Positions 745 through 26,164 of a DNA stretch of 64,000 nucleotides are shown one piece after another (the first letter of the stretch is position 1; every line of letters starts with the position of its first letter). The position numbers were made by a program, and so were the translations under genes. The stretch is from the sequence record NC_070650.1; one strand, 5' to 3'. The notes under the pieces are model-generated. The model was not told where the DNA came from. It saw only the letters and a program-made list of their open reading frames with translations, and made no database searches.

Positions 745-796
745 ACGGCATAGGAGGAGGCGAAAGCCTCCTCCAGTTATGCTGTCTTTTTATTTT
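745..796. repeat. 52-bp repeat copy 1 / bidirectional terminator hairpin
   Basis: ACGGCATA-GGAGGAGGC-GAAA-GCCTCCTCC-AGTTATGCTGTCTTTTTATTTT; identical to 26113..26164 and 50/52 identical to 9278..9329; lies between convergent genes. Confidence 0.95.
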
Positions 797-1410
797 TTGC
801 GTTTAAACGCATAGGTGCCAATACCGTCGCGACCCAAATCAGTTTCAATGGTATTATACTCCACCAAATCAAAACCTTCGCCACCCATAAACCGAATAAG
901 GCCGGCATGAGTGAAATACCAGATATGTTCATCTTTGCGGTAATGGATGGATCTGGTGATGTGTTCTGCATCAGTAAAAATAGGGATGGATACGAATACC
1001 CAATCTGTTGCCTGGGCAAGCGCAACATCAGGTTCATCGATGTGCTCTAACGCATCCCAAAAGGTCAATGCACCAATAGGGGATTGATAGAAATCGTGAA
1101 ACTTATTCTGGTCAGCTAACCAGGCAATACCTGCTGGATTAACATCAAACCCAACGGCTCCTTCGCAGTTGTCTACGAATTGACCAGCTCCGATACCCAC
1201 ATCGCACACTGGACCGGACCAGTACTTCTTAACTAAATCCACCCGGGCTTTAGTTAGGGCGTCGCCCATCGGTGTAGCTGCGCGTTCACGATAGCGTGCG
1301 AAGTATTCTGCATCATAAGGGCGTGCATCTTTGGGTACCGGGTAATGTCCGATACCCAGCTCAGGAAAGAAAGAAAGTTCGGCGTTGAGTAACTCAGAGA
1401 CCTTGCGCAT
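790..1410 (-). CDS. class I SAM-dependent methyltransferase
   Basis: Motif I VCDVGIGAG, then GFDVNP and TFWDALEHI. Confidence 0.8.
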   Translation of the reverse strand: MRKVSELLNAELSFFPELGIGHYPVPKDARPYDAEYFARYRERAATPMGDALTKARVDLVKKYWSGPVCDVGIGAGQFVDNCEGAVGFDVNPAGIAWLADQNKFHDFYQSPIGALTFWDALEHIDEPDVALAQATDWVFVSIPIFTDAEHITRSIHYRKDEHIWYFTHAGLIRFMGGEGFDLVEYNTIETDLGRDGIGTYAFKRKK

Positions 1411-2284
1411 TTAACCACCCGTTAATTTTTCCAGTGACATTACTGATGTATTTGTTGCACGCATGCTTCATTTCATAACACATACAGTACTTGTCAGGAT
1501 AAACAAACAAGCAGTTGTGTAAGCTCATAATTCTCGGGTCGGTGATTTTAGTGTGATGGTTACACCCACCGTTACCACCCCCTAAGAAAATAGTGGGGCG
1601 GCGATAAGCGAAGGCGGCTTGAGATATTAAGCAAGGCCCGGTCACTACAATATCAGCACGTTCCACTAAGGCCATCAATTCCGTGATTGATAGCTCTCCT
1701 TTATGTATCTTTAAATGTGCGAATGGTTCCACATCCGGAATCCACTCTGCGCCAGGCTCTAAATCTGCCACGCTGATACAGAAATATCCCCGAGCCTGTA
1801 ATGCTTTGGAGACCTCATCGATATGTTTGTTTAACGGCCCTCTAGAAGCATTATGCCACTCTTTACGTTCGGTAGTCGGGCGTATCAGTGCAAGTTTCTT
1901 GATGTTGCCCGGAATGTATTTGTTGGGTAATTGAAAGTGAGGCATATCCAGTGCTACAGGCTCCACACCGAATTGGCGGCGACCGGCAGCGAACACAGAA
2001 CCATTCTCCAGATCTTTAATCCCATAAAAGATTTTCTTCGTGATAAGTTTCAGGTCACGGGGAACCTCTTCATATTTAACCTGCGTCCTGCTTTCATTTT
2101 TCTTTTGTGTACGCAGAGTAGTGTTCGCTCTAACAAAGTGAACATTAGGGATGTCCTGATAGAATTCTGGGATAGGAGTTTGAATCCAGACCTCATTGCC
2201 TGACATTACTAGCCGCTTAATAAATGGCCGCTGAAGTAGTTGATCGCCGATGCCCTGCATTCCATTGATTAGGTATCTTGCCAT
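1394..2284 (-). CDS. GT-B glycosyltransferase, GT9 (heptosyltransferase)-like
   Basis: N-terminal GIGDQLL motif, C-terminal LSITELMALVERADIVVT...PTIFLGG, Cys-rich tail. Confidence 0.72.
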   Translation of the reverse strand: MARYLINGMQGIGDQLLQRPFIKRLVMSGNEVWIQTPIPEFYQDIPNVHFVRANTTLRTQKKNESRTQVKYEEVPRDLKLITKKIFYGIKDLENGSVFAAGRRQFGVEPVALDMPHFQLPNKYIPGNIKKLALIRPTTERKEWHNASRGPLNKHIDEVSKALQARGYFCISVADLEPGAEWIPDVEPFAHLKIHKGELSITELMALVERADIVVTGPCLISQAAFAYRRPTIFLGGGNGGCNHHTKITDPRIMSLHNCLFVYPDKYCMCYEMKHACNKYISNVTGKINGWLNAQGL

Positions 2285-2302
2285 GGTAGTTACCCTCTAT
2301 TG

Positions 2303-2875
2303 TTATAATCGAATACTCGAGGACCATAACTCATCCTCTAATGTATTAGTTTTAAATGTTTTCAATTCCGTATATCGAGAACAGTTAATGACTGACATAG
2401 TTCCAATGATATCTGGGACTTGGTTAAAACAGCCATGCCATTTTTCGATATCGCTGTCTTTAGGATTCGAAAGGTCATCGATATGGGGTCCGTGCCAATG
2501 TAGCCCATTAGCCAGAGAACAATCATAACCCAATAACAATACTCTCTCAGCACCGAGATTGTGAGCCAAACAAATAGCGCGCATGCCTGAGTTGAATGGT
2601 CCTTTTGCGGGTATTGGCATGTACTGAATATCTGGGTAATCTTTTATTGTGGTTCTGATAGAAGTCCATTTCACCATCGTATTAGGTACCTCATCGTGAT
2701 ATTTGCGCCACCATGTTAAATCTCCGGCATAGATGTGGTCACAAGTAGGCACTTTACGCCAACTATTATTGACCGCGATAATCGGATAATTAGTTCGCAT
2801 GATGAGATGGCAGTCCTCATCAGTGAGTGATGGCCCTGAGGCTACACAAATGAACGTCTTTTTATCGAGTGGCAT
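2303..2875 (-). CDS. nucleotide-sugar transferase-like protein (Maf/MptE/sialyltransferase-like Rossmann fold)
   Basis: ICVASGPSL, IAVNN, NSG..AI.LA..LGA..VLLLGYD pattern. Confidence 0.6.
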   Translation of the reverse strand: MPLDKKTFICVASGPSLTDEDCHLIMRTNYPIIAVNNSWRKVPTCDHIYAGDLTWWRKYHDEVPNTMVKWTSIRTTIKDYPDIQYMPIPAKGPFNSGMRAICLAHNLGAERVLLLGYDCSLANGLHWHGPHIDDLSNPKDSDIEKWHGCFNQVPDIIGTMSVINCSRYTELKTFKTNTLEDELWSSSIRL

Positions 2876-2945
2876 GAGATAAGCCTTACAGTAGTGGACG
2901 TTAAAACCTATATCATTTTTCCATTAAACAAAACAAACATGGAAC

Positions 2946-2953
2946 TATATTAC
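2946..2953 (+). promoter_or_regulatory. phiKZ-type early promoter motif TATATTAC
   Basis: Exact match to the phiKZ early consensus in an AT-rich intergenic region upstream of a + run. Confidence 0.7.
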
Positions 2954-2993
2954 TGATTGGACGAATGTTGCGTATATTGGAGAGCATTTTATC

Positions 2994-3758
2994 ATGAGTA
3001 ATAACAACGTCATTCCTTTTACGGGTAAAAAATTAATGTCCAACTGTCCGGTTATGGTCATGGACTGTGAGACAACTGATCAGATGACTCGAGTATCTTT
3101 CAGTATGACCGCGATGCAATCTTCTTTACGACTACGACCGGCATCCTTGCAGACCGACGACTGGCTATCCACGATGTTCGGCTCAACCCCGACAGTCATG
3201 TCAGGCGTTCTCGATGTTCGTGTACGTAACCGATTTATTGATGCGTTTAAATGTGGCGGTTTGACGCTGTCTAGGTGGCTGAACGAGGTCCGATATCTCA
3301 GCCAGTTGCCGCTGTGTGATATCGTAGCGACCTACGACCACTACGAAGAATTCAATGGATGGGCCGATGTAGACCGACCAGCAATTCGATTTAATCTCGG
3401 TAAAGGGGTTTCCATCACTCAAGAGTCGTTCTTATTGGGTGAGGGGTCAGATTACCCGGAGACCGCCGTCGAGGACTATCGTAAGTCAAACGTAGGCTGT
3501 GTCGAGATTGATGAGATTTATGACCACTGCTCAGATGACGCCCTCAGGAAATTGACTGTCGAAGTTCAATTGGTGGAGCACTTAGCTGATTGTTTTTATC
3601 TGGATGCTTTAGCTTGGGGCGGTGGTTGGGAAGTAGAAATAACGGAGAAAGAAACTACATTCTGTTTCTTAGAGGCGGTAACCGCAAAACACATCAAACG
3701 TTGGGCGTTATCCATCAATAACGAGTATTATAGTGTTTTCTTAAATGGGGATATTTGA
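2994..3758 (+). CDS. hypothetical protein
   Basis: 254-aa ORF with GGAGAG SD. Confidence 0.75.
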   Translation: MSNNNVIPFTGKKLMSNCPVMVMDCETTDQMTRVSFSMTAMQSSLRLRPASLQTDDWLSTMFGSTPTVMSGVLDVRVRNRFIDAFKCGGLTLSRWLNEVRYLSQLPLCDIVATYDHYEEFNGWADVDRPAIRFNLGKGVSITQESFLLGEGSDYPETAVEDYRKSNVGCVEIDEIYDHCSDDALRKLTVEVQLVEHLADCFYLDALAWGGGWEVEITEKETTFCFLEAVTAKHIKRWALSINNEYYSVFLNGDI

Positions 3759-4266
3759 TATGAAAGTATCAAACTGGAATGCATCAAACTGGTCAGCGTA
3801 TATTCATAACGGCAGCGTTATCGTAGAATCGTCCATGGGTAGCGCCTCAGTATTTCCGGCAACCGATACCAAGTATACGTTGTCATTAGGGGATGGCGGA
3901 TATTATCTAACCACTAAACCAAGTTACACCACCTGTTTTTTATCTGAGCCGGGGGGCAGTCATAACCCATTCCAAAACACATTCGAATTGCAGGCCGCAT
4001 TAAATCAATATTTCATCAGTGATGACGTCGAGGTATTTACTACTCCCGTAGAGAAACCCAAGAAATACATGCGCCTCCCTAACAGCGGAACGTTGGTGTA
4101 TCTGGTGGACATTTTGTCTGCGTGTAGGTTGACTCACGGTGACCATAATGGGACCAGTTTATTTATTCAGTATCCCATTGGTGGTATTCACATTTCCTGC
4201 GGCACTATCGAAAACGCAATTGCCGATGAGCGAGCATTGACCGAATACTTACTTTCGCTGCGGTGA
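3745..4266 (+). CDS. hypothetical protein
   Basis: 173-aa ORF; C-terminal module resembles that of 5290..5745. Confidence 0.7.
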   Translation: MGIFDMKVSNWNASNWSAYIHNGSVIVESSMGSASVFPATDTKYTLSLGDGGYYLTTKPSYTTCFLSEPGGSHNPFQNTFELQAALNQYFISDDVEVFTTPVEKPKKYMRLPNSGTLVYLVDILSACRLTHGDHNGTSLFIQYPIGGIHISCGTIENAIADERALTEYLLSLR

Positions 4267-4718
4267 GGTCTGGCATGCCAATTACCATTAACGACGGGTC
4301 GGTATTTGATGTACCCGCACAGACGGTTATTAATACCGTCAACTGTGTTGGTGTCATGGGCAAAGGACTGGCCAAGGAATGTGCTATTCGTTTTCCAGAG
4401 ATGGAATCAATCTATAAAGATAAATGCCGGCGGCGTGTGTTATCCCCAGGTAAGTTATACCTGTATACTGCCGGTACGCCGTGGATACTGAACTTCCCAA
4501 CCAAAATACATTGGCGTAACCCTTCTCAGATAGAATGGATTGAATCTGGGTTAGCGACGTTACGTAGGGTTTACCCACAAATGGGACTAACCTCGCTGAA
4601 TGTTCCGCAGTTGGGTTGTGCTAACGGTGGGTTGGCATGGCCTGAGGTAAAAGACCTAATCTATCTATATCTAGATTTGCCTGATTTGCAAGTGAACATT
4701 TGTCTAAACAACCTTTAG
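4263..4718 (+). CDS. macrodomain ADP-ribose glycohydrolase (DarG/Poa1p-like)
   Basis: INTVNCVGVMGKGLA, ILNFPTK.HW, PQLGCANGGL.W motifs. Confidence 0.9.
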   Translation: MRSGMPITINDGSVFDVPAQTVINTVNCVGVMGKGLAKECAIRFPEMESIYKDKCRRRVLSPGKLYLYTAGTPWILNFPTKIHWRNPSQIEWIESGLATLRRVYPQMGLTSLNVPQLGCANGGLAWPEVKDLIYLYLDLPDLQVNICLNNL

Positions 4719-4726
4719 GGGCTGCA

Positions 4727-5287
4727 ATGAAAGAATATTTGGTTTATCGTGGGGAATATGGGGCGAGGGCGGTGTTGTCCACGCAGCTGGGTTCACTGAC
4801 ATTTGTCGATGAACGCACCGTAGCTGAGCATTATGCCAGGATGCCCAATCAATGGCACTACACAGGTCTCAAGGAACCTAAACTCATCGTGGCTAAAGTA
4901 GGTATCCATCGTCCATTTATTAACACCCCACGAGACCCATTCATTGAGTTCAAAGACATCCGTAACAGTTTAGGACCAACCCACGCAATTAGAATCGCCC
5001 GTAAGTTTGCTGATAGTATCGTGGAAACGGATGCTTGGGTCGCATTGGCCAAGAAACACCGGGTCAATACCTTGGATGAATATTTGGCTCTACCTGATGC
5101 AACTACCCAAAAACTGTGCATGCAGGCATATCGGTATTTTGATGACCCAGAGGAAGTAAAGGTGTTGGTAAAACACCATTTTGATGGTGCCATCTATCGC
5201 GGTTCCGGTGAAAGTATGAATTGCGTTGAATACCGGATATTTAATTGCGACAATATCATGGTGCTGGCGATAGCCCCAGTGAGGTGA
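4727..5287 (+). CDS. putative ADP-ribosyltransferase-fold protein (ART-PolyVal-like)
   Basis: LVYRG strand, SLTF....AEHYA, FDGAIY and C-terminal VEYRIF; ATG 4727 follows an AGGGG SD. Confidence 0.5.
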   Translation: MKEYLVYRGEYGARAVLSTQLGSLTFVDERTVAEHYARMPNQWHYTGLKEPKLIVAKVGIHRPFINTPRDPFIEFKDIRNSLGPTHAIRIARKFADSIVETDAWVALAKKHRVNTLDEYLALPDATTQKLCMQAYRYFDDPEEVKVLVKHHFDGAIYRGSGESMNCVEYRIFNCDNIMVLAIAPVR

Positions 5288-5289
5288 CT

Positions 5290-5745
5290 ATGTACGGTGT
5301 TATTGATGGTATCTTGGATGCCGGTAAAATCAAAGCTCGTCTTTACGATGAGCTTAATGGTCATGAATTTCATAGCGATGCCGTTATTGACAAAACAGCC
5401 TTTTCAGAAAAAGATTGGGGTGATATTACCCAAGCGCCAGATGCTGGATTTATTTTTCTGATAAATGATGATAAATGCATATTGAGGAGAGAGAACATGA
5501 ACGACGAAACTAAAGCCATCGAACCTAAATACATTACGCTCTCATCCGGAGCCACCGTATGTCTGGATAACATTTTGGTTGTTGGTGAAGTAAAGAAAAT
5601 AGAAGGACTCTGCACCGAGTCTTATATTTTCCACATTCACTATAGAGGGCAATCCTTGCCGGTAGTGATGCCATACGACGGTAATAATTACCTTGCCCGC
5701 AAAGACCATGCCGAACTGTGTCGCAAATTAACAGGGGTGAAATAA
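5290..5745 (+). CDS. hypothetical two-module protein
   Basis: GAGGTG SD; N-terminus resembles 6116..6523, C-terminus resembles 3745..4266. Confidence 0.7.
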   Translation: MYGVIDGILDAGKIKARLYDELNGHEFHSDAVIDKTAFSEKDWGDITQAPDAGFIFLINDDKCILRRENMNDETKAIEPKYITLSSGATVCLDNILVVGEVKKIEGLCTESYIFHIHYRGQSLPVVMPYDGNNYLARKDHAELCRKLTGVK

Positions 5746-6101
5746 TGACTGAATTAAAATTCATGGACCTGGCAATAAAGCCAATGGGATTTATTGATGA
5801 TGCTTTCCCTGGAGACAGCGTACTGTTCATTACATCCACTACACTCGAGGTATCTGGCGGGCATAAGCTATATTTTTGTCAATTACCGCCATGTGATTGG
5901 GGGTCTCGGATTGATGAGCTAAAAGCTTATTACCGTGAATTTACCTCTGCGGGAACTATGACGTTCGCTATTTTTGATGTATTGGCCATATCTGAGAATG
6001 TAGTCAGTCTCAAAGGGATATTTCCAACAAATACATCGATCAATTGCATTTATGACAAACAGGCAGCTTCATTGGAAATAATTCCAACGGTTATGCATTA
6101 G
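5745..6101 (+). CDS. hypothetical protein
   Basis: TAATG overlap with upstream stop; weak similarity to 6523..6858. Confidence 0.7.
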   Translation: MTELKFMDLAIKPMGFIDDAFPGDSVLFITSTTLEVSGGHKLYFCQLPPCDWGSRIDELKAYYREFTSAGTMTFAIFDVLAISENVVSLKGIFPTNTSINCIYDKQAASLEIIPTVMH

Positions 6102-6858: not shown

Positions 6859-6976
6859 CGATGTAGAATAATTACTAGCCTTAATTATAATGCGATAAAA
6901 AGAAAAGTCGGCCCACGAGCCAGGCAGTTGTACGTCCCCAGGACGCTAAACACTCAATAATAAATAGTCTAAACCC

Positions 6977-8176
6977 ATGAGGATTACAAATATGTCATAC
7001 CAAAGTTATTTTCTATCAGAAGCAAAACTCGCAGGCATATCTAAAGAGGACCAAGAGTTGGTCTTGAAGATGCTAAAGCCTATTTCGGATGAAGGACATT
7101 CTGGCGGCAGCATGAGCGTTTTTATCCAGTGGTTGGAGGACTGGGCCAATAACCCACAAACCATCACCGATAAGCGCAGTATGCTCTACCCGGTACAAGA
7201 ATCCGTGAAGGGTTTATCCTACGACGATTTGAAGCGGATCGCCGGATACGTTTATAAGACCTGCGCTTTTGAGCCGTTTACCCCACTTACCGGTAAAGAC
7301 GATGAGTGGATTGAATGCCATGATGGCTGGTACCAAAACCGTCGATTTAGTAAAGTATTTAAAGAAGGGAAGGACGGAATTCCGTATTGTCTTGACCGCG
7401 TAATTTGGTGCTATCCCTACAATGATTTCTCTGGATGGGGTGCGGTTACCCGTGGCGGTGGATGGAGTAGCGAGGACATCACGTTTCCGTATGACCCGGC
7501 GGCCCCAGAGAACGCAACAGAATATCGGTATTTCTTAGCCGACGATTGGCGTGAAGAACTCCCCGCAGAAATACCACCAAAAATCTGGCTGCAATGGCAA
7601 CGTCGCCGATATCATGCAGGCACTGACCTCGCCACTGGGAAGCTAAGACTGGACGTCATTTGCTTAGGTGAAACACAGCTTAATGAAGTAATCGTCGCAT
7701 ACGCCGCGGTTAAAACACATATTGAGACAACGGAAGGTCTGACGTTGGAACGTGCGATTCGTAAGCTCGGATGGGTGTGGGACTGTGATGATGAAACTTG
7801 GTTGAATTGTGGGCATACCATCGTAAAAACTGCTGACCTGGCACAAAAAGTCAGTTACCTATTAACGACTGAGCCGAAAGATACTACCGGGTATGCGGTA
7901 CAACAAACCACCATGTTACAACCAGGGAAATTCTATCAGCGATGGAAGCATTATCGCGATGATTACTTTGGGTGGATGAGGACTTCAGATAAACCCGAAC
8001 CCATCTATGTAGACAATGATAGAATGGTAACTGGCGACCACGATGACTATCTATGGCAACAACGCCGTAAATATGGTTATGCGCATCCTAAACGTAAAGG
8101 GGCGGTGCATGCTTCAGAGAACATAGTGGCGTGTGATGGCGAACAGCCACCGTTGGATGGTGCTGAGCCGGCATAA
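6977..8176 (+). CDS. conserved phage hypothetical protein
   Basis: 399 aa; contains FTPLTGKDDEW...YQNRRFSKVFK, a motif of a common phage family of unknown function. Confidence 0.75.
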   Translation: MRITNMSYQSYFLSEAKLAGISKEDQELVLKMLKPISDEGHSGGSMSVFIQWLEDWANNPQTITDKRSMLYPVQESVKGLSYDDLKRIAGYVYKTCAFEPFTPLTGKDDEWIECHDGWYQNRRFSKVFKEGKDGIPYCLDRVIWCYPYNDFSGWGAVTRGGGWSSEDITFPYDPAAPENATEYRYFLADDWREELPAEIPPKIWLQWQRRRYHAGTDLATGKLRLDVICLGETQLNEVIVAYAAVKTHIETTEGLTLERAIRKLGWVWDCDDETWLNCGHTIVKTADLAQKVSYLLTTEPKDTTGYAVQQTTMLQPGKFYQRWKHYRDDYFGWMRTSDKPEPIYVDNDRMVTGDHDDYLWQQRRKYGYAHPKRKGAVHASENIVACDGEQPPLDGAEPA

Positions 8177-8190
8177 CAAATAACCCAATG

Positions 8191-8214
8191 GGGAGGGCAA
8201 ATGCCCTCCCTTTA
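8191..8214 (+). terminator. intrinsic terminator-like hairpin
   Basis: GGGAGGGC-AAAT-GCCCTCCC followed by TTT. Confidence 0.75.
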
Positions 8215-8233
8215 TATCCTGGAGATAACTATC

Positions 8234-8497
8234 ATGAATATTCGACAACGTCGTAAACGTATTGCCCGCTCACGTAAAGTCGGAGGGTTCGTACTGGACT
8301 TCGACGACGGCACCACATTACAGGTTCCCATCTTCGATTCGCGGATAGCCGAAGAAGGTTGTGATGTCGCCATCGCAAAAGCGGTTAAATCTGCGTTACT
8401 GCGGGATGCGCTACGTAAAGGCGCAACAGGCATTGTTGATGTCGAAGTGAACGTCCAAGGTAAGGACATCCAAATTGATTGGATAGGAGAAGTTTAA
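8234..8497 (+). CDS. hypothetical protein
   Basis: GGAG SD before ATG 8234; basic N-terminus. Confidence 0.7.
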   Translation: MNIRQRRKRIARSRKVGGFVLDFDDGTTLQVPIFDSRIAEEGCDVAIAKAVKSALLRDALRKGATGIVDVEVNVQGKDIQIDWIGEV

Positions 8498-8498
8498 T

Positions 8499-9278
8499 AT
8501 GCCCGATGTGATTGCCCACCCAAATAAAGGCACTGTTGAAATCTCAGCTGACGTCTATGAAGCTTTACGTGCGTACCATCAGGGTCGGGTCTTAGTACCT
8601 GAACGCCTGACCGACTATCGTAAACAAAATGGACTTAAAGTTGGGGAATTTAGTGAAGCGATTGGCTATAGTTGTGTATCTGCGATTGAGCGGCATGGCA
8701 CTCAACCTAGTGCGCCAGTCATGGACCGATTACAGGTCGCTTACCCTAAAGCGAAATTCGTGGTAGAGCTTCCAGAACTGACGCCGTCCAAAAATCAAAA
8801 ACCGTGCATTGATGTAAATAAAGTTGTACGACACATCAAACGCAAATATCCGGACAAAAGTAGAGTCGAATTGTGCGAGATTACTGGTTTGGCGATGTCT
8901 CAGTTATTTAAAGTATTGGCTGGTTCATATCGTGATTTCAAGCCTATCACGGCCGGGCGCATGTTCCGTAGTTTAGGTGTAGTCCCAGAACGTTATTTGC
9001 TTGGGGTAGTATTACCCGAGAAAATGTCGCAGGAATATGCCGACATTCTGGAAATGGCTGCCCAGAATAAAGTCACTATATTTAGCCAATTCATGTCTAC
9101 TGTTCCAGGGGTGATGGAAGACCTCACACGTGAACTTAACTTGTCAAACCAAATCATCAGAATGTATCAGTCGGGTAAATCATTTCCACTGTTAACCAAT
9201 TACTTGTTGATTTGTGAATATTACGGATTACCGTTTTATTATTTCGAACAAGACTGGTTGGCAAACGGCGAACACTAA
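8499..9278 (+). CDS. multi-HTH (XRE-like) DNA-binding protein
   Basis: LTDYRKQNGLKVGEFSEAIGYSCVSAIERHGTQP, plus two further HTH-like segments (ELCEITGLAMSQLFKV; LNLSNQIIRMYQSGKSFP). Confidence 0.6.
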   Translation: MPDVIAHPNKGTVEISADVYEALRAYHQGRVLVPERLTDYRKQNGLKVGEFSEAIGYSCVSAIERHGTQPSAPVMDRLQVAYPKAKFVVELPELTPSKNQKPCIDVNKVVRHIKRKYPDKSRVELCEITGLAMSQLFKVLAGSYRDFKPITAGRMFRSLGVVPERYLLGVVLPEKMSQEYADILEMAAQNKVTIFSQFMSTVPGVMEDLTRELNLSNQIIRMYQSGKSFPLLTNYLLICEYYGLPFYYFEQDWLANGEH

Positions 9279-9329
9279 CGGCATAGGAGGAGGCGTAAGC
9301 CTCCTCCAGTTATGTTGTCTTTTTATTTT
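9278..9329. repeat. 52-bp repeat copy 2 / bidirectional terminator
   Basis: Differs from copies 1 and 3 only at loop GTAA and TATGTTG. Confidence 0.95.
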
Positions 9330-10135
9330 GGGAAAAAACCAATTACTTCCCGGACTTTTTCCCTGGACTTGGCCCCGATGCTACGCTGTACCTGAATCAC
9401 CTCAAATTCCATGCCTTTGTATACCTCACGCGTCCCAACGGTATCAGACCCCGATACAATGACTTTATGGCCATCATTGGACAATTGACGCATGCAGGAC
9501 ATAAGTTGTTCATGGTCTCTAAAAGAGAACCCACTAGATTCATAGTTCGTGAAATTGGAAGTAGGATTCCACGGGACGTAAGGCGGGTCACAATAAATAG
9601 TACTTTCCTGAGGGAATGTCTGTTTGGTCAAAATAGAATCAAACGTACCACATAAAAACCGGGTATCGGTTCTACGGATTTTCTCGTGCATTTCCAGAAC
9701 AGCGGCTTTGGGGTAGAGTGGTTTAGTTCTACGACCGAATGGAACGTTGATTTCATTTTTGCGATTGTATCTACACAGCCCATTAAACCCATGGCGGTTT
9801 AAGTACATGAACATGGCAGACTGAATCACCCGGTCTTCGGTACGGGCATTGAACTTATCTTTAGTTTCCAGATAGGTGTCAAGGTTATTACCGGTGGCAA
9901 ATAAAGGTTCGGCGCACGCCAGTAAGTCATGCGGGTTCTCGTCGACAGTTTCATAGAAAGTGATTAAATCTTTATTGATGTCGGCTAGAATATAACTTGG
10001 ATAATCCGTATTAAGAAATACCGCGGCACTCCCGACAAAGGGTTCTACCAGACAGGACACCTCACCAAAGTGGGGTTTTAATGCATAGACTATTTTACTT
10101 TTACCGCCGGGCCATAATAACGGAGCTGTTTTCAT
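9323..10135 (-). CDS. dam: DNA adenine methyltransferase, Dam (D12 class)
   Basis: WPGGK, VEPFVGSAAV, YLNRHGFNGLCRYN, IYCDPPY motifs. Confidence 0.95.
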   Translation of the reverse strand: MKTAPLLWPGGKSKIVYALKPHFGEVSCLVEPFVGSAAVFLNTDYPSYILADINKDLITFYETVDENPHDLLACAEPLFATGNNLDTYLETKDKFNARTEDRVIQSAMFMYLNRHGFNGLCRYNRKNEINVPFGRRTKPLYPKAAVLEMHEKIRRTDTRFLCGTFDSILTKQTFPQESTIYCDPPYVPWNPTSNFTNYESSGFSFRDHEQLMSCMRQLSNDGHKVIVSGSDTVGTREVYKGMEFEVIQVQRSIGAKSREKVREVIGFFPK

Positions 10136-10161
10136 TCTATCATCCTAATATTTTTAAGGAA

Positions 10162-10169
10162 TATATTAC
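10162..10169 (+). promoter_or_regulatory. early promoter motif TATATTAC
   Basis: Exact match, divergent from dam. Confidence 0.7.
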
Positions 10170-10216
10170 TTTGGTGAATGTACTATATACGATCCATCTA
10201 TTGAAGGTAAAATAAA

Positions 10217-10795
10217 ATGACTGCAACTAAAGTATTTGACGATATTTATCTGGTTCGGGACTATAATGAATTTGTGGCGTTAGCTGAACAATTAAGCGTA
10301 CATGTTTTGTACCACCTGAATACCAATATAAGTGAGTACCCAGCTTTGGTAGATACCCGCGGCACCTGGGAAATCAAATCTCTCGGTGATGTAGTTGCAA
10401 CACAAAACGTAGAGGCTGAACCCACCCCAAGCAACATTCAAACCACCATCGTAGTAATGGAGGTAGGCGGTGGTTTGTTAGAAGGGGGGCGTTTGTTAAC
10501 GCAGGCACTTCCGGCTGGACACCACGTTGTTGGGGTTGATATAACTGGGATTGCTTCCGTGGGAGTTCCAACCAAACTTCCAATCAAGTGCCTTATCACA
10601 ACAGAAAACGAAGGTACTGCAGTGATGTCAGCAGTACGTGATATTCCGTGTGAAGACGGTGATTTCATTCCATTGTGGTTTAAGGCTACTTATGCCAATG
10701 GTAGATTCAAAGCAGCTAAACTCATGCATAGCGATTCGAATGGACATACATTCCGTTCCGTTACGCTGGCCATTCACACCTATAAACCATTTTAA
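10217..10795 (+). CDS. hypothetical protein
   Basis: 192-aa ORF with GAAGG SD. Confidence 0.75.
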   Translation: MTATKVFDDIYLVRDYNEFVALAEQLSVHVLYHLNTNISEYPALVDTRGTWEIKSLGDVVATQNVEAEPTPSNIQTTIVVMEVGGGLLEGGRLLTQALPAGHHVVGVDITGIASVGVPTKLPIKCLITTENEGTAVMSAVRDIPCEDGDFIPLWFKATYANGRFKAAKLMHSDSNGHTFRSVTLAIHTYKPF

Positions 10796-10830
10796 CTGAC
10801 GACCCACCCCATAAGCCTAGGACAATTATC

Positions 10831-12057
10831 ATGACCGTTAAATCCAAATTCAATCGATTTCTGATGCGCTCGATTTCCTGCGGTATTACCAACCAGCTCG
10901 GCAATAAAGTTTTATACCGCATCAAACTCAAAACCGACCTCGCAGCTTTATTTCTGGAATCCATCCCTGACGATAATTTACGTGAGGTATGTAAATGTAC
11001 CCGCTGCTTAGATAACTTACGTCAGTGGGGTAATACGGCGTATTTTGATGAAAGCCGCGGTACGTATAACAGTGTCTTTTTCGACATCACCGGCGATTAT
11101 GCCGAACGCACGGACCCGATCGATGATGAATTTTGGCCCTTCGCTAAGCAACTGCACGCGTTGCTAAACGACGATCCTGAAGTGACTGAGGTCATGGCTG
11201 CCCGCGTCGATGGTAAACACACTTTAAATAATGTTGGGTATGAGCATTTTCACATTAAACCAACGGATGGTTGGAAAGACTACGTACGGCGACCGGATAT
11301 GCCCCGCGTATTGAACATTCAATCGCGGTGGTTTGGTAAATGGGGTAATAATGACGCACTCATCCGAGAAGCTTCTGATGTGGTGGTCAAGGTAACCGAA
11401 GAACTGAAAAAACATACGGATATGCAAACAGCCGCTGCCCGTCTTTTGCGGCAATTTACGGGGTTTGAATCTATTTGGCGTAACCAGCAATTCGTCCGCA
11501 CCAAAGCCATGTCCGATGGTTCGGATTCCATGATGCTTCCGGTCAGGTATGCATTACATTACACGTATGCTGGAAATCGTTCACCCTACATTCTCAGTAT
11601 TTTGGATTCTCTTTATTCAGACCCCGAGGGTAAATATCGTGAAGGTTTGGTTGAACGGACAGTAAGCCGGATTTTATCGGATGTTGAGGCTGCCCAAGCT
11701 AAAGATACCGAAGAATATATTGCCCACCATCAAGCCATGTTTGATGATTGGGTGGTGTGGTTGGCGGCGGCTAAATTATCGGCTCCAACGCCGCATAGCT
11801 TAGCTAAGTTAATTACCATCATGGCTGACCTGGATTCCATGGAAGAGGAATCTTTGTTGTTGGTTCAAGAAGCATTTGGCGGTTTCGAGATCGGTGAGGT
11901 TGAAACCATCCCAGATTCGCTTCGCAACTCTGCCGCGATTCGATGGATGTTGAATGAAAAATATTTAAGTTCAACGTTTAAACCTGGATTACAGCCGGCG
12001 TTTACTTTAACTGAAAACGGGGTGCTTGCAAAACATCTGTTAGCCGCTAAGAAATAA
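10831..12057 (+). CDS. hypothetical protein; N-terminal domain paralogous to 12079..13719
   Basis: LFLESI...CKCTRC..NLRQWG aligns with YLDAF...CNTCAGFFRKYG. Confidence 0.75.
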   Translation: MTVKSKFNRFLMRSISCGITNQLGNKVLYRIKLKTDLAALFLESIPDDNLREVCKCTRCLDNLRQWGNTAYFDESRGTYNSVFFDITGDYAERTDPIDDEFWPFAKQLHALLNDDPEVTEVMAARVDGKHTLNNVGYEHFHIKPTDGWKDYVRRPDMPRVLNIQSRWFGKWGNNDALIREASDVVVKVTEELKKHTDMQTAAARLLRQFTGFESIWRNQQFVRTKAMSDGSDSMMLPVRYALHYTYAGNRSPYILSILDSLYSDPEGKYREGLVERTVSRILSDVEAAQAKDTEEYIAHHQAMFDDWVVWLAAAKLSAPTPHSLAKLITIMADLDSMEEESLLLVQEAFGGFEIGEVETIPDSLRNSAAIRWMLNEKYLSSTFKPGLQPAFTLTENGVLAKHLLAAKK

Positions 12058-12078
12058 ATTACAGCCGGTGGTCAGTTT

Positions 12079-13719
12079 ATGACCACCGTTTTAATAAAAC
12101 AACCACAAAGTAAGGATGTAATAATGAATGTTACCGTAGCCTTAGATTATACCAAACTGTTAGAACACGTAAAAGCAACCGCTGCCAAAAATCTCACCGA
12201 TCAATCCGTGGCGTTATTTGCGACTGCCCCCGAAACCAAACTCTACCAAACCTACCTGGATGCATTTGATACTGGCGATCGTCAATCTCATACCTGCAAT
12301 ACCTGTGCTGGGTTCTTCCGCAAATACGGCGGCCTGGTAACCATCCATCCCCTGACCGGCGAACAAAAATCTGTGCTGTGGGATGAAACCGATGCACCTG
12401 AAGGCTACGAAAGCGTAGTCGCAGCACTTCGCGCGGCGGTGGAAGCCGCACCGGTATCTTACCCGTTCTTTACCGATCGTGTTGCACTGGGCGATGTTGA
12501 GAAAGGTGGGTTCGGTCATTTCCATTTCGATGCACCGGCATCTGTAGTGAAAGACAGCGATTTTGATGCGCGTAAAGCGCTGGCTAAAGCGATTGAAAAC
12601 CGTGGGCTGTTTAAACGCAGCTTGGGTTTATTCAAATGCGCCCCCTTACAGCAGCTTTTGCACAAATTCACTTACGACTCCGCACTGCGTTTTCTGGAAG
12701 ATGAGCGTGAGCGGGTAGAAGCCTTCAGCGAATTCCTGACGTTCATTCGTAGCACGAGCAATCGCAAGGCACAAGAAAATCTCATTTGGCTGAAAGCGGC
12801 GACAGATGGCGGATATGTTACCGGGTTCAAAAATGATCTTATCGGTCAGTTGGCGCTTGATTTCTCTGAAGGCGATCCAAACGCAGTTTCTCAATACCTG
12901 CAACGTCGTAAGGGCGAAAACTACATGCGTCCTAAAGCGGAGGTTGACGACAACCAGCTGGACGTGGCGCAGAAGTTAATCGTGGATCTGAATCTCCAAA
13001 CAGCGTTACGGCGTAAAGCGGTTACTGCTGAAGACATTCCGGCCACAGCCGTTATCTGGTCGGCGGCGCCAGAATCTGAAACCCCGGTGGACACCACCGA
13101 TCTATTCAGCGAATTGCGGACTAACCAAAAAGCGCCGGATGCCGCCCCTACGGTTATGGGTCCTCAGGACTGGGGTACGGTAATGCGCGATTTACTGCCT
13201 AAAGCGACTCAGATCCGCTATTTTGTCCCCCAACAGGTAGTGTTGGGTGGTATGGTGACGGCAGAAGTGGAATCTGCTGAACCCATCATTAAGTGGGACG
13301 CACCCGAACAGCGCAATCCGGTATCCCCGTGGTCACACATTGATCGTAGTTTTCCACACATTTATGGTTTAAACCATACCTGGACCAATGTATCGTGCAT
13401 TGCGCGGCAGGTAGATGCCTGGGGTGTTGTTGATGCCGATCCCACCAGTGTTTTCCTACACCTGTCTGAAGCACGCATCACCGAAGAACACCTCGCGCCC
13501 GGGCTTGGGTTATTCCCCGAAATCCTTCGCTCCGAACTTTATCCCATCCGCGCGGTAATGGAACGTTACTCCAATGCCAAGCGGGCCACCAACTGGGAAC
13601 AAAGCGCATTGTTTGCGTCCTGGCATAAAGGGTTCAATCTGGCAAACGGCGCGGTTGCTCGTCTGTGGATGACTCTACCAACCGGCGATGTTATCGTCGA
13701 TATTTCTCGCTGGGAGTAA
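12079..13719 (+). CDS. conserved large-phage protein of unknown function
   Basis: 546 aa; HTCNTCAGFFRKYGGLVTI and HFH motifs; host-like codon usage. Confidence 0.8.
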   Translation: MTTVLIKQPQSKDVIMNVTVALDYTKLLEHVKATAAKNLTDQSVALFATAPETKLYQTYLDAFDTGDRQSHTCNTCAGFFRKYGGLVTIHPLTGEQKSVLWDETDAPEGYESVVAALRAAVEAAPVSYPFFTDRVALGDVEKGGFGHFHFDAPASVVKDSDFDARKALAKAIENRGLFKRSLGLFKCAPLQQLLHKFTYDSALRFLEDERERVEAFSEFLTFIRSTSNRKAQENLIWLKAATDGGYVTGFKNDLIGQLALDFSEGDPNAVSQYLQRRKGENYMRPKAEVDDNQLDVAQKLIVDLNLQTALRRKAVTAEDIPATAVIWSAAPESETPVDTTDLFSELRTNQKAPDAAPTVMGPQDWGTVMRDLLPKATQIRYFVPQQVVLGGMVTAEVESAEPIIKWDAPEQRNPVSPWSHIDRSFPHIYGLNHTWTNVSCIARQVDAWGVVDADPTSVFLHLSEARITEEHLAPGLGLFPEILRSELYPIRAVMERYSNAKRATNWEQSALFASWHKGFNLANGAVARLWMTLPTGDVIVDISRWE

Positions 13720-13728
13720 CAACATAAC

Positions 13729-13758
13729 GAGTAGGGTTTCGGCCCTACTCATTTTTTT
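13729..13758 (+). terminator. intrinsic terminator
   Basis: GAGTAGGG-TTTCGG-CCCTACTC followed by a T run. Confidence 0.8.
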
Positions 13759-13776
13759 TAATTAAAGGTAAACCCA

Positions 13777-14325
13777 ATGGCCACTGAGACTGAACGCGTA
13801 TATCGCGGTATTTTTTCTTCTATTCCCGAAGGGGGTAGCTTCACCATCATCCAACAATGGGAAGGTTTCGTACATCGCGATGATGGAATGATTACTAACC
13901 GTTGTCGTGCATGTTTGGCGGTTAATGACGGCGTGAAAGGTGAGAAGACCTTTAGCGCTTGCACCAAATATACCTATAGTCGGGATGACCTGGATAAGTC
14001 CGCGGTCGAGCTGGAAACCGATAACCTCACCGAAAGTCAAATTGAGATCATCTCCAGCATGCTGGATGTCTCAGTATTCAAAAAACGCTATGTGCTGCAA
14101 GGCGGTGGGTTGACTTTGGATGTGGACATCTTCTATGACCAAGTCCATAAAGAATGGCTGAATGCGTTTAAGGTCGATATAGAAGGGGGAGAAACACCCT
14201 CTGAAGAAGACGTCAAAAACATCCTGGCCGAACACGGGTTTGTGGTCGAAGCCTTCATCCCGGTACAAGAATTCGGTAAGCGGTTTAATGCCATCACCCG
14301 GATAGAGCAGTTTAAAGGTAATTAA
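13777..14325 (+). CDS. CYTH/TTM (triphosphate tunnel) domain-like protein
   Basis: N-terminal ETERVY (EXEXK-like), RCR, ELE, KKRY, LDVDIF pattern. Confidence 0.55.
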   Translation: MATETERVYRGIFSSIPEGGSFTIIQQWEGFVHRDDGMITNRCRACLAVNDGVKGEKTFSACTKYTYSRDDLDKSAVELETDNLTESQIEIISSMLDVSVFKKRYVLQGGGLTLDVDIFYDQVHKEWLNAFKVDIEGGETPSEEDVKNILAEHGFVVEAFIPVQEFGKRFNAITRIEQFKGN

Positions 14326-14331
14326 TTCAAT

Positions 14332-14354
14332 GGTGGGTGTATACCCACCTTTTT
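14332..14354 (+). terminator. intrinsic terminator
   Basis: GGTGGGT-GTAT-ACCCACC followed by TTTTT. Confidence 0.8.
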
Positions 14355-14373
14355 ATATCGTGGGGATAGAAAT

Positions 14374-14961
14374 ATGTTTGATTTTGATAAGCGAAAAAAT
14401 GCTGTGTCTGTCACGGATGCGATGGTCGCCGCATATGCGTCACTGACAACAAGTTTACAAAAAGAGCTTCTCCGCAGCCAAGAGATATGTCGTGAAATGT
14501 TGGAACGATCTAGTACGCAACCAAATGGCTGGCATAATTTTTTGGATGAAATTATATTCAGTCATCCGGTGGGTGTATGGACTTATGATTTTCAATATGG
14601 TGGTGAAGGTAATACCAGTAGGATTGTCGGCATACGTAGTCTGGCGACAGATTTGGTTTTTCCTGAATTCTATCCGTTTTACCAAATCGATCTATCGTCC
14701 AAACCTAAAACGGAGGATATAGTAACTCCATTTTATCCCGAACTGATAACCAGATACCGCACTATGGCCGAGTCCCGTGGCCCTAGCGATGAAACACTAC
14801 ATCTGTTGGATATGCTCAATACCCTAGAGCATTCAACGGAACAATCCCTGACTAAAAAGCATCGTTGGCTAGGGTGGATTCAAGGTGAGTTGATTCATCT
14901 TGGCGCCACTACTGTGGAAGCAGAACGTGATTTTACCCGGGATATATTTAAGGGGGCTTAA
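14374..14961 (+). CDS. hypothetical protein
   Basis: 195 aa; C-terminal KHRWLGWIQG motif seen in phage hypotheticals. Confidence 0.75.
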   Translation: MFDFDKRKNAVSVTDAMVAAYASLTTSLQKELLRSQEICREMLERSSTQPNGWHNFLDEIIFSHPVGVWTYDFQYGGEGNTSRIVGIRSLATDLVFPEFYPFYQIDLSSKPKTEDIVTPFYPELITRYRTMAESRGPSDETLHLLDMLNTLEHSTEQSLTKKHRWLGWIQGELIHLGATTVEAERDFTRDIFKGA

Positions 14962-17551: not shown

Positions 17552-17567
17552 ATACCTTATGGTTCTG

Positions 17568-17592
17568 AGGGAGGCTTCGGCCTCCCTTTTTT
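17568..17592 (+). terminator. intrinsic terminator
   Basis: AGGGAGGC-TTCG-GCCTCCCT followed by a T run. Confidence 0.85.
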
Positions 17593-18036
17593 ATGTTGTT
17601 ATGGGGGATTATGGTATCCTTAAGTAAAAGTATTATGGAGCTTACTGATGTATTTCAGGCCCACGCGTTGGAGGTGGTGGCATATACCCACGGCAGCGGC
17701 AGCGTTTCTCCGCCTATTGCACAAATAATCAATTTCGGATTATGTCATGTTTTTGCTAAACTTGTGTTATTGCGGCATCCGGAGGTCCGACTAGTAGGTA
17801 GTCCGACTCATGTTTTTTTGGAATTAGACGGTTTGTATTATGATTCGGCACACCCCGCAGGAATAGATAGCTTAACTAGATATCCTCTACCGTTATTGGA
17901 TTATTCCTCCACAAAAAAACTAACGTATGAATTCCCCGATTATATAACCGCCCTAGCTGCTGTTTCATGGTTGCTGCAAACTTCCTGGAAAGCGCAATAC
18001 ATTCAGTTATGTCGTGAAGTCCACATCACTAATTAG
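17593..18036 (+). CDS. hypothetical protein
   Basis: ORF between terminators; start uncertain; HVFLELDGLYYDS motif. Confidence 0.65.
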   Translation: MLLWGIMVSLSKSIMELTDVFQAHALEVVAYTHGSGSVSPPIAQIINFGLCHVFAKLVLLRHPEVRLVGSPTHVFLELDGLYYDSAHPAGIDSLTRYPLPLLDYSSTKKLTYEFPDYITALAAVSWLLQTSWKAQYIQLCREVHITN

Positions 18037-18044
18037 AATATACT

Positions 18045-18080
18045 GGGGGGTATTACCCCCCCCCATATGCCGCTTTTTTT
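18045..18080 (+). terminator. terminator hairpin with TATGCCG
   Basis: G6-TATTA-C9, then ATATGCCGC and a T run. Confidence 0.65.
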
Positions 18081-21522: not shown

Positions 21523-21549
21523 TTAATTTACAGGGTACCGTAAATGTAT

Positions 21550-22907: not shown

Positions 22908-22916
22908 GAGAAAACA

Positions 22917-23516: not shown

Positions 23517-23518
23517 CT

Positions 23519-24058: not shown

Positions 24059-24077
24059 TGCAAAATTTTTATAAATG

Positions 24078-24085
24078 CATATTAC
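24078..24085 (+). promoter_or_regulatory. early-promoter-like motif CATATTAC
   Basis: One mismatch to TATATTAC, upstream of the secreted-protein operon. Confidence 0.5.
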
Positions 24086-24124
24086 TTAGCTGACTATACC
24101 TCCACTCTATTCAGCTGAGGAACT

Positions 24125-24478
24125 ATGATGAAAAAGTTAGTGCTGTTGTGTTTTGCTTTATTTGCATCTATTGGGGTGCAGGCCCATAACTTTGGACCTG
24201 CCTCAATGCAGAACGCCCGCGGGGTTAATGAAACCATCGTGGTGATGAACTTAAAATCTACCTGGTCTGGTTTTTATTCATTTTCCGTGGGTGGCAAACC
24301 CCTGCGGGATAATGGCAATAAAATTATTCAAAAATTTGTTATTGAGGGAATGACCGCTCAGTTCCCATTCACAATCGATAACAAATATATCAAAAATGAC
24401 CACGTGATGATTTGCTCTTGGGAAAATCGTCCGGACGTTATGTTCAAACAAGAGGTATGCTTCAATGTCAAAGTGTAA
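24125..24478 (+). CDS. secreted protein, Ig/PapD-like beta fold (putative)
   Basis: Sec signal MMKKLVLLCFALFASIGVQA; beta-rich mature part with a Cys pair (ICSW...EVCF). Confidence 0.6.
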   Translation: MMKKLVLLCFALFASIGVQAHNFGPASMQNARGVNETIVVMNLKSTWSGFYSFSVGGKPLRDNGNKIIQKFVIEGMTAQFPFTIDNKYIKNDHVMICSWENRPDVMFKQEVCFNVKV

Positions 24479-24863
24479 ATTACTATTGAGCTGCCTCATC
24501 GGTATGCTGCTCAGCGCTGCCGCGTTTGCGGACATGCCCTACATCACGAACAACATTGCTGAATCGCGCGAGCGTGTGCAAAACGGCGATATGTCATGTG
24601 AAACAAGTCACCCCCAGGCAACTGTTAATGCTGGGGTCTACGGTAATAATGGACAGCAGTATCGCTATCAGGACGATGACAAAGGGGCATTCATCGCAAT
24701 CAGTATCCCCATTGGCGGTAATCAAAACAAAGTTGATTGCCAACCGATGTATGACCAAATGCTCCAACAGAAGGACTTGCAACTCAAACAACTGCAAGCC
24801 CAAAATGAAATGCTCATGAAAAACCTTCAACTTCAATCAGACCGTTCGTTAACTGCAAAATAA
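24465..24863 (+). CDS. secreted beta-hairpin plus coiled-coil protein
   Basis: Signal peptide ending AAFA; SC...GAFIAISIPIG...DC followed by a Gln/Leu coiled coil. Confidence 0.65.
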   Translation: MSKCKLLLSCLIGMLLSAAAFADMPYITNNIAESRERVQNGDMSCETSHPQATVNAGVYGNNGQQYRYQDDDKGAFIAISIPIGGNQNKVDCQPMYDQMLQQKDLQLKQLQAQNEMLMKNLQLQSDRSLTAK

Positions 24864-24874
24864 GGAACTTAGTA

Positions 24875-25378
24875 ATGAAATCACTTTATGCAATCATCGT
24901 GGTATTTATGATGACTCTGAGCACCAGTGTGCTTGCGGCATATCCGTCGGAGCAAGTGTGGAACGCCAGCATCACCAACAACCAAATCACCTGTGGCATC
25001 GACTACCCTAACGGCTCGCCAATCGAAGGCGGCATTCTGGTATCCGGTGAAAGCGGTACCGATGGCTCCAAAGCCATTACGTTTAATTTGCGCACCAATA
25101 CGCCGACCGTGGCCTGGAAACTAACCGAAGCGAAAATCGTGAACAACACGAACCGTTACAGCTTTGGTGATGACCTCACTCAGATCAGCAGCACCAGTGA
25201 TACCAGCGTGTACGTAAATAACACCGAATATTCCTGGGCTCAGGCGATGCAGGCGCATAACGTCAATTCCAATACTACCGTCGTCAAGCTGGCGCCGAAA
25301 ATCAACATGGACCAGGCGCTGCTGCCGACCGGGACTACTCGGATTCAGGGCAAGATCGTTGTGGTGTGCAGTAACTAA
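24875..25378 (+). CDS. secreted pilin/fimbrial-like beta protein (putative)
   Basis: Signal peptide ending VLA; Thr/Asn/Ser-rich; Cys near both ends; terminal strand GKIVVVCSN. Confidence 0.55.
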   Translation: MKSLYAIIVVFMMTLSTSVLAAYPSEQVWNASITNNQITCGIDYPNGSPIEGGILVSGESGTDGSKAITFNLRTNTPTVAWKLTEAKIVNNTNRYSFGDDLTQISSTSDTSVYVNNTEYSWAQAMQAHNVNSNTTVVKLAPKINMDQALLPTGTTRIQGKIVVVCSN

Positions 25379-25397
25379 TCAATACGGCAGAAAAAAT

Positions 25398-25428
25398 AGA
25401 GAGGGCAATTGCCCTCTCTTTTATGCAG
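25398..25428 (+). terminator. intrinsic terminator
   Basis: AGAGAGGGCA-AT-TGCCCTCTCT followed by TTTATGCAG. Confidence 0.8.
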
Positions 25429-25624
25429 TTTTCTTGAATAAACGGGATAAAAAATCACGACTAAATTACTCAATGATACTTTTTCTTCTTTCGCTGAAGC
25501 TATTGGAGCCTACCAGTCCATTACTGGAAGATTTGATAAGGCTGGCGTGGGTTACATTACCCACTAACTATCGGGGGGGGGAGGGTATTGCCCCCTTGTC
25601 TGATAATAACCTCGGAAAACCAAA

Positions 25625-26113
25625 ATGTCACTCATCATAAAACGAACCGAACACACTAAGTTGGTGGATTCTTTAAGGCTCCACCACACTAGGGCAAAAA
25701 TGGCGTTAAACGCCAACTCTCATTACACTTGGGAAGCACGGCGCCATAACCTGAGAGATATCATCACAATCTGTTTTCAGGCAGGCGATAGAAAGGTACG
25801 GATTGTCGACACCAATCTATCGATTGATACTCTCACGCCTTGGCCTGGATTTTATGAGTTGCCGGCCCTTTCTTTGGGTGTAGTCAAGGACGAAGAGTAT
25901 TACAACGGTTGGAACATAGCTGACCGATTGAGTGTTTTGTTGAATGTTCCGCTCCCCGGTCCAAGTGGTGGTGAGTACGCATTCAATGATACTCAATACC
26001 CCTACCTATTGACCCCGCGGGATGACTATACCGAACTCTGCATCACCGGTGCAATTGAATGCGCCAATGGAGATATCGGCATATATTTGCGGGATTTCCC
26101 ATATTCCCCGTAA
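25625..26113 (+). CDS. hypothetical protein
   Basis: 162-aa ORF whose stop overlaps repeat copy 3. Confidence 0.7.
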   Translation: MSLIIKRTEHTKLVDSLRLHHTRAKMALNANSHYTWEARRHNLRDIITICFQAGDRKVRIVDTNLSIDTLTPWPGFYELPALSLGVVKDEEYYNGWNIADRLSVLLNVPLPGPSGGEYAFNDTQYPYLLTPRDDYTELCITGAIECANGDIGIYLRDFPYSP

Positions 26114-26164
26114 CGGCATAGGAGGAGGCGAAAGCCTCCTCCAGTTATGCTGTCTTTTTATTTT
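26113..26164. repeat. 52-bp repeat copy 3 / bidirectional terminator
   Basis: Identical to 745..796. Confidence 0.95.

Follow-up and report, generated by a model that had tools for sequence, protein, structure and literature searches.

The 64,000-nucleotide (nt) stretch analyzed here (the window) matches bases 1-64000 of Klebsiella phage vB_KvM-Eowyn (NC_070650.1) at 100% identity and contains three copies of a 52-bp element, every one of which lies between the stop codon of a plus-strand gene and that of a reverse-strand gene. This 52-mer is very probably a bidirectional intrinsic terminator of the phiKZ type, located at the meeting point of plus-strand and reverse transcription units. A preliminary description of the same DNA had proposed a portable module that acts in termination and in recombination; its terminator half is supported by the RNA fold, by a phiKZ-type box, by a genome-wide family of related hairpins and by the rules that these follow at gene junctions. 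Eowyn, of the genus Eowynvirus, has a genome of 265,389 bp. Its annotated genes for a nuclear shell protein, PhuZ tubulin, RpoBC and split RNA polymerase beta subunits identify it as a phiKZ-like jumbo phage that forms a nucleus and transcribes with multisubunit RNA polymerases of its own. The element is best explained as a phiKZ-type bidirectional terminator, a description that is new for an Eowynvirus; the terminator type is already known.

Structure and position of the 52-bp element

All three copies are found on the plus strand, at positions 745-796 (0 mismatches), 9278-9329 (2 mismatches) and 26113-26164 (0 mismatches), as previously described. The 52-mer has 0 matches in 100 shuffles and forms the only strong repeat family in positions 1-30000; the repeat is real and non-random. 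The copies, and the parts of the first one, are as follows.

745..796, both strands: copy 1, putative two-way terminator; plus-strand RNA -32.5 kcal/mol (z -7.3), minus-strand RNA -27.9 kcal/mol
745-752: outer arm of copy 1
753-774: inner 9-bp stem, GAAA loop and stem of copy 1, followed by a 3-nt bulge
778-785: TATGCTGT box and outer arm of copy 1
786-796: C and T5AT4 tract of copy 1
9278..9329, both strands: copy 2, with GTAA loop and TATGTTGT box; base 1 is the last base of the gp016 stop
26113..26164, both strands: copy 3, identical to copy 1; base 1 is the last base of the gp042 stop

The element had been reported to start at or near the stop of a plus-strand gene, and we find the gp002 stop at 741, 3 nt ahead of copy 1, while the last A of the TAA stop forms element base 1 in the case of gp016 (copy 2) and gp042 (copy 3). 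At the opposite end, the stop codons of the reverse genes gp003, gp017 and gp043 correspond to TTA at element positions 46-48, and the last Lys codon of each gene is inside the element as well (the protein endings KRKK*, FPK* and EVK* given earlier are correct). These stop and Lys codons sit in the 3' T-tract of the element in one fixed register.

From 5' to 3', the element consists of the outer arm ACGGCATA, the inner stem GGAGGAGGC, a GAAA or GTAA tetraloop, the complementary stem and a 3-nt bulge, followed by the box TATG(C/T)TGT, whose bases pair with the outer arm, and by C-T5-A-T4. The plus-strand RNA is predicted to form an interrupted hairpin of 17 bp that is closed by a GNRA loop (-26.6 to -32.5 kcal/mol) and directly followed by a U-tract, a form that corresponds to a canonical intrinsic terminator as judged from these features. 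In the minus-strand RNA the same palindromic hairpin (-21.4 to -27.9 kcal/mol) is followed by UAUGCCGU, and the opposite strand thus combines the hairpin with TATGCCGT. Fold z-scores range from -4.0 to -7.3, with 0 shuffles folding equally well. Located 2 nt past the inner stem, TTATGCTGT or TTATGTTGT is an exact fit to the published phiKZ box TTATKYYGT, and the box of the opposite strand, CTATGCCGT, has one mismatch to it. Inside the 52-mer we found neither a TATATTAC motif (a candidate promoter element, see below) nor a sigma-70-like site. An Rfam search with the element returned no family match, and none of 185,579 bacterial and archaeal genomes contains a match to the core pattern. With blastn-short we located two more copies of the core beyond the window, at 129119 and at 135212 (the latter inverted). 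The GGAGGAGGC subfamily thus comprises 5 copies in Eowyn, and 5/5 are found at convergent junctions.

A genome-wide family of boxed hairpins

Other terminators in the window had been noted to share only short flanks with the 52-mer. This is correct and provided the key clue to a wider family, as the same hairpin design is present at nearly all of the ~25 convergent junctions and in many co-directional gaps across Eowyn. The design comprises (C)GGCATA(A), a purine-rich GC stem (GGGAGGGC, GGGAGAGGC or GGAGGAGGC), a tetraloop, the complementary stem and NN-TATGYYG. Judged by this design, the 52-mer represents a single subfamily within a family of putative terminators that extends over the genome; other subfamilies have different inner stems and form near-identical pairs at convergent junctions (72399/117012, 77916/107220 and 82953/143767). 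Because 27 unrelated IMG/VR contigs contain the exact GGAGGAGGC stem, the stem by itself is not diagnostic, and informative matches are only those with CGGCATA/TATG arms. Family members elsewhere in the window include the following.

17567..17597, plus strand: putative co-directional terminator upstream of gp028, hairpin and TTTTATGTTG; left junction of the gp028 deletion in the related phage KpHz_2
18045..18085, plus strand: putative terminator downstream of gp028, hairpin, TATGCCG and T-tract; right junction of the same deletion
31155..31218, both strands: convergent junction gp054/gp055, family hairpins with TATGCCG / CGGCATAA arms
41324..41347, both strands: convergent junction gp071/gp072, family hairpin that has another inner stem and a TATGCCG box
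50737..50783, both strands: convergent junction gp086/gp087, ACGGCATA...TATGCCG outer arms with a different inner stem

A genome-wide count returned 94 GC-rich hairpins, 41 of which are boxed; a TATGYYG box is located at most 6 nt away on 53 of the 188 hairpin sides. Boxes on both sides are present in 10/23 hairpins at convergent junctions compared with 2/71 elsewhere (Fisher p = 6e-6), and 10 of the 12 hairpins boxed in this way mark convergent junctions. Between co-directional plus-strand genes, the box is found on the plus side only in 15 cases and on the minus side only in 4. This distribution is as expected of a strand-specific stop signal that would be doubled where transcription comes from both sides.

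Signals of this kind have been mapped in related phages. In phiKZ, ONT-cappable-seq defined 133 termination regions, 61 of which are intrinsic terminators with a stem-loop followed by TTATKYYGT, and terminator regions that act in both directions separate convergent genes in 6 cases (Putzeys et al. 2024, PMC10914365). In 201phi2-1, 15 of 132 termination sites are bidirectional, the principal motif is akin to that of phiKZ, another one lengthens the hairpin (motif A and A/B), and 8 terminators were validated by reporter (PMC11512511). Our hairpin scan, applied to phiKZ 1-50 kb, located CGGCATA-hairpin-TATG palindromes at the convergent junctions 25214, 34917 and 43768. Erwinia phage Ea35-70 has a related hairpin plus TTATGCCGA within a co-directional gap, and a metagenomic chimallivirus with ~30% protein identity to Eowyn contains ACGGCATA-GGAGGAGGC hairpins at two convergent junctions.

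The Eowyn elements share with the phiKZ and 201phi2-1 terminators a GC-rich stem-loop directly followed by the TTATKYYGT box, dozens of copies per genome, an intergenic position just past stop codons, an outer arm that elongates the hairpin, and the setting of a nucleus-forming jumbo phage that transcribes by its own polymerases. Palindromes boxed on both sides at convergent junctions are likewise found in phiKZ. The 5' arm is purine-rich in Eowyn (GGAGGAGGC, GGGAGGGC), in contrast to the C-rich 5' arm and G-rich 3' arm of the published phiKZ consensus. This opposite stem polarity marks Eowyn as a variant, the phiKZ polarity being a consensus description and not a functional definition. Eowyn also differs from phiKZ in its loops, which are GNRA or UUCG tetraloops, and in a second T5-7ATTT tract past the box in many copies. 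The phiKZ and 201phi2-1 ends were mapped as transcripts, whereas the Eowyn elements are known here from sequence alone, and we infer transcript ends at the Eowyn sites from the 3' ends mapped in those two phages. Bidirectional intrinsic terminators between convergent genes are also well known in bacteria. As in the bidirectional terminators of phiKZ and 201phi2-1, one symmetric hairpin in Eowyn lies between two convergent stops and has signals on both strands, but the reverse direction uses a phage-type box instead of a U-tract, and the reverse gene has its stop codon within the T/A tract of the element.

In the mechanism that we propose, a polymerase coming off the plus-strand gene would transcribe the 17-bp interrupted hairpin with its GNRA tetraloop and then C-U5-A-U4, and the transcript would be released. 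A polymerase coming off the reverse gene would pass the stop codon of that gene in the A-tract, then the same palindromic hairpin and then the phiKZ-type box UAUGCCGU. The element would insulate the convergent units from one another, and plus-strand transcription would restart from a promoter beyond the reverse genes. The three copies would be near-identical because almost every position is constrained, be it in the stems, the boxes, the T-tract or the stop and last codon of the reverse gene, and they would go back to an old duplication, one older than the four known Eowyn-like genomes.

Several points weigh against this interpretation. Mapped 3' ends in related phages alone do not separate termination from RNA processing, the reverse-direction signal has no long U-tract, and the stem polarity is reversed compared with the published phiKZ consensus (5' arm G-rich here, C-rich in phiKZ). 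At site 4 (129119) the T-tract is missing and the 3' box reads TATGCGG, which deviates from the consensus. In addition, function alone leaves unexplained why the GGAGGAGGC stem occupies five sites and GGGAGGGC/GGGAGAGGC are used elsewhere.

Related genomes, reverse islands and alternative explanations

The only close relatives of Eowyn in the phage collection are the 'Serratia' phages KpHz_2 and KpGz_1, both isolated on K. pneumoniae. A fourth Eowyn-like genome, represented by OGVK01 metagenome contigs, was recovered by a scan for the arm-plus-stem pattern (one contig per site, 5/5 sites). Copies and gene islands were compared among these four genomes; relatives in collections are 80-97% identical to Eowyn only, and the tests do not reach older events. 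IMG/VR protein searches with gp019, gp006 and gp046 returned no relatives, and tblastn matches of gp018 and gp016 in the phage collection are confined to the Eowyn clade. KpHz_2 is a mosaic that shares ~97% identity with Eowyn over 36.9-200 kb and 80-87% over 1-36.7 kb, where it resembles KpGz_1, a pattern that indicates extensive exchange of the early-gene region by recombination. An identical stretch of 127 bp is directly repeated at the two ends of the Eowyn record (window 1-127 and Eowyn 265263-265389), and metagenome contig L054 is continuous across their join. The record therefore does not begin or stop at physical ends, and no genome terminus lies near copy 1.

We compared 20 copies (five sites in four genomes) over 37 non-loop positions. 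Both stems are invariant in 20/20 copies, variation being confined to loop, bulge and a few positions of the box; sites 1-4 have ACGGCATA as their 5' outer arm, and site 5 has GCAGCATA. Orthologous copies differ by 1.2 nt, compared with 2.7 nt for paralogues within a genome and 2.8 nt between genomes (permutation p = 0.14). As orthologues are closer than paralogues, the copies track the locus and not the genome, and they evolve as fixed loci with no clear gene conversion. It is thus unlikely that ongoing gene conversion, and not selection at each site, maintains the near-identity of ordinary terminator copies. Such conversion could account for the 52/52 identity of Eowyn copies 1 and 3, which share a box C (TATGCTGT) lacking in the orthologues of the other three genomes, and for an ATT bulge variant at several sites in KpGz_1 and the metagenomic genome only; however, few positions are free to vary, and two identical copies are not improbable. 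The loop, which is always GNAA or its complement TTNC in the 20 copies, changes between orthologous sites and flips its orientation there (GTAA/TTAC, GCAA/TTGC), as might result from exchange with an inverted copy or from hairpin-mediated inversion. A CGTA/TACG flip also distinguishes two copies of the distant metagenomic chimallivirus (L048, L051). Inversion within the palindrome is the simplest explanation of the flips.

The boxed hairpin could alternatively be mainly an RNA processing or stability element, or a binding site for a phage protein, and not a polymerase stop. Conservation of the arm and box (CGGCATA / TATGYYG) and of the purine-rich stem as sequence from phiKZ to Eowyn, with 0 compensatory stem changes in 20 copies, would fit such a role, but the plus-strand form is that of a textbook intrinsic terminator with hairpin and U-tract, and both the strand rule and the convergent-junction rule fit termination. 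In addition, 8 terminators of 201phi2-1 stop reporter transcription without phage factors (PMC11512511), and we regard a processing or binding role as decidedly improbable.

The recombination half of the preliminary description concerns the genes that surround the window copies. These genes, and the candidate restart motifs beyond them, are listed below.

340..741, plus strand: gp002, predicted to be terminated by copy 1, no family match
790..2875, minus strand: reverse island 1, with gp003 (S-adenosylmethionine (SAM) methyltransferase), gp004 and gp005
2946..2953, plus strand: TATATTAC motif past island 1, candidate restart promoter 41 nt upstream of the gp006 ATG
8499..9278, plus strand: gp016, HTH_3-containing, predicted to be terminated by copy 2
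9323..10135, minus strand: reverse island 2, with gp017 (Dam-type N6-adenine DNA methyltransferase)
10162..10169, plus strand: TATATTAC motif past island 2, candidate restart promoter upstream of gp018
25625..26113, plus strand: gp042, predicted to be terminated by copy 3
26158..26490, minus strand: reverse island 3, with gp043 (DUF6527 protein)

The islands had been called the only reverse ones in about 30 kb, and gp003-gp005, gp017 and gp043 are indeed the sole annotated minus-strand genes in 1-31 kb. It is very improbable that the 52-mer is a portable terminator and recombination module through which reverse accessory cassettes are shuffled, as in T4-like phages. The island genes belong to phage-wide families and their plus-strand neighbours are clade-specific, which would suit a cassette, and the three-gene module of island 1 recurs in D3/PAJU2-like Pseudomonas phages at ~35% identity (counterparts of gp004 in relatives are annotated as GT9/GT-B glycosyltransferase, and gp005 is a sialyltransferase-like/MptE-like protein). 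The island genes are plausibly acquired accessory genes; their GC content of 0.42-0.47 is ordinary compared with 0.452 for the genome and gives no sign of recent acquisition.

The genome comparison argues against movement through the repeat. All three islands and five copies are at orthologous positions in KpHz_2, KpGz_1 and the metagenomic relative, with exactly five copies apiece in KpHz_2 and KpGz_1. The available relatives retain the islands in collinear order, an outcome that the preliminary description had itself set against its proposal. Alignments with KpHz_2 and KpGz_1 are unbroken through repeats and islands (window 1-5746, 6867-14379 and 25544-32000). Only one copy accompanies each island, and no second copy or other repeat is found on the far sides (2876-2993, 10136-10216 and 26491-26511), which in the case of island 3 is a gap of only 21 nt. 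The window copies are direct repeats; a crossover would therefore delete 8.5 or 16.8 kb of essential-looking plus-strand genes and not swap an island. Pairs among the three complete genomes differ by 35-44 indel events, ~70% of which have no end within 40 nt of a GC-rich hairpin. Both ends are near a hairpin in ~5% of indel or replacement events, and the proximity is no more than expected if ~1/4 of intergenic gaps hold a hairpin. There is also no significant concerted evolution among the copies.

Two cases bring family hairpins, as opposed to the 52-mer, close to a gene difference and could be taken to favor cassette exchange. gp028 (17611-18036) is present in KpGz_1 and cleanly missing in KpHz_2 (positions 17590-18066 of the window), and the junction lies in the TATG box that two successive family terminators have in common (hairpins 17568-17587 and 18045-18061). 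This loss is a single case among dozens of events, and the 52-mer is not involved. The second case is a co-directional junction in the Eowyn tail-fibre region whose hairpin (212596-212615) has boxes on both sides and where relatives have a reverse tailspike-like gene, but the accompanying serine recombinase points to a different mechanism. Immediately after this hairpin, both relatives encode a beta-helix (pectate-lyase-like) tailspike-type gene on the reverse strand and a serine recombinase (Resolvase + HTH_7), in KpGz_1 at 123457-125570 (L015:23457-25570) and in KpHz_2 at 190110-192514 (L010:40110-42514); the tailspike gene differs between the two. The segment looks like a Gin/Cin-type invertible or exchangeable host-range segment without counterpart in Eowyn.

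In KpHz_2, KpGz_1 and the metagenomic relative, ~1.4 kb of different DNA stands in place of Eowyn gp039-gp041 (window 24086-25544) and encodes a 443-aa AAA ATPase-domain protein (L053:4424-5755). Contig OGVK01000301.1 (L053:7002-8006) contains a 263-aa Cys-rich open reading frame (ORF) that has no Pfam match and adjoins a thymidine kinase homologue. Past this ORF, 216 bp share 99% identity with Eowyn 2282-2497 (gp004 start and gp005 end, island 1), and the arrangement could reflect a duplicated homing-endonuclease-like gene or a chimeric assembly.

The analogy drawn to T4 stem-loop cassettes does not hold. Promoter-early stem-loops (PeSLs) are reportedly mobile regulatory cassettes of T4-type phages, and Arbiol et al. 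in 2010 are said to have found that they bear promoters, flank variable ORFs on both sides and coincide with differences in gene content among relatives. PeSLs and the Eowyn element are both repeated stem-loop regulatory sequences that border small accessory genes in a large lytic phage, but the Eowyn element contains no promoter, is present once per island and not on both sides, and occupies sites at which the gene content of relatives does not differ.

The preliminary description had also placed a divergent promoter at the border of two islands. The TATATTAC motif is present there, at 2946 and 10162, but on the plus strand only; it would therefore be a restart signal for the next plus-strand gene and not a divergent promoter. 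Across the window the motif occurs 7 times, always on the plus strand (2946, 10162, 18118, 30879, 43415, 52108 and 60325), compared with an expectation of 3.1 on both strands together. Six of the 7 sites are intergenic and upstream of plus-strand genes, including the nuclear shell protein gene, and the motif is a candidate phage promoter element. We also considered the arm TATG as a late promoter, using what we take to be the phiKZ-type consensus, and rejected it, since a promoter at these junctions would send antisense transcripts into the adjacent gene.

Finally, a selfish miniature mobile repeat that spreads in the genome, similar to miniature inverted-repeat transposable elements (MITEs) or repetitive extragenic palindromic (REP) sequences, could produce several near-identical palindromic copies in intergenic DNA, but is extremely improbable given that the positions are fixed in four genomes, the copies have no target-site duplications and overlap the stop codons of flanking genes in a fixed register, and neither the bacterial and archaeal genomes nor Rfam returned a match.

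Implications for phiKZ-like phages

Sequence conservation beyond structure hints at recognition of the two-way terminator by the phage transcription machinery. We see a small chance that the boxed hairpin CGGCATA / TATGYYGT is a sequence-specific stop for chimallivirus RNA polymerases or a phage factor, and that successive boxes form occasional microhomology sites and module boundaries. The proposal of sequence-specific recognition is made because arms and stems are kept as sequence from phiKZ to Eowyn, without compensatory changes. If genes were gained or lost together with their terminators at successive boxes, in the manner of gp028, the terminator family would double as module boundaries.

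The finding reveals no new mechanism of gene shuffling. The elements may be usable as compact two-way insulators in phage or Klebsiella constructs, and the box rule (a hairpin with a TATGYYG box downstream of it, doubled to either side where genes converge) would delimit the transcription units of phiKZ-like phages from sequence alone. The phiKZ terminator signal appears to be conserved across phages of Pseudomonas, Erwinia and Klebsiella hosts, which points to recognition by the machinery of the phage.

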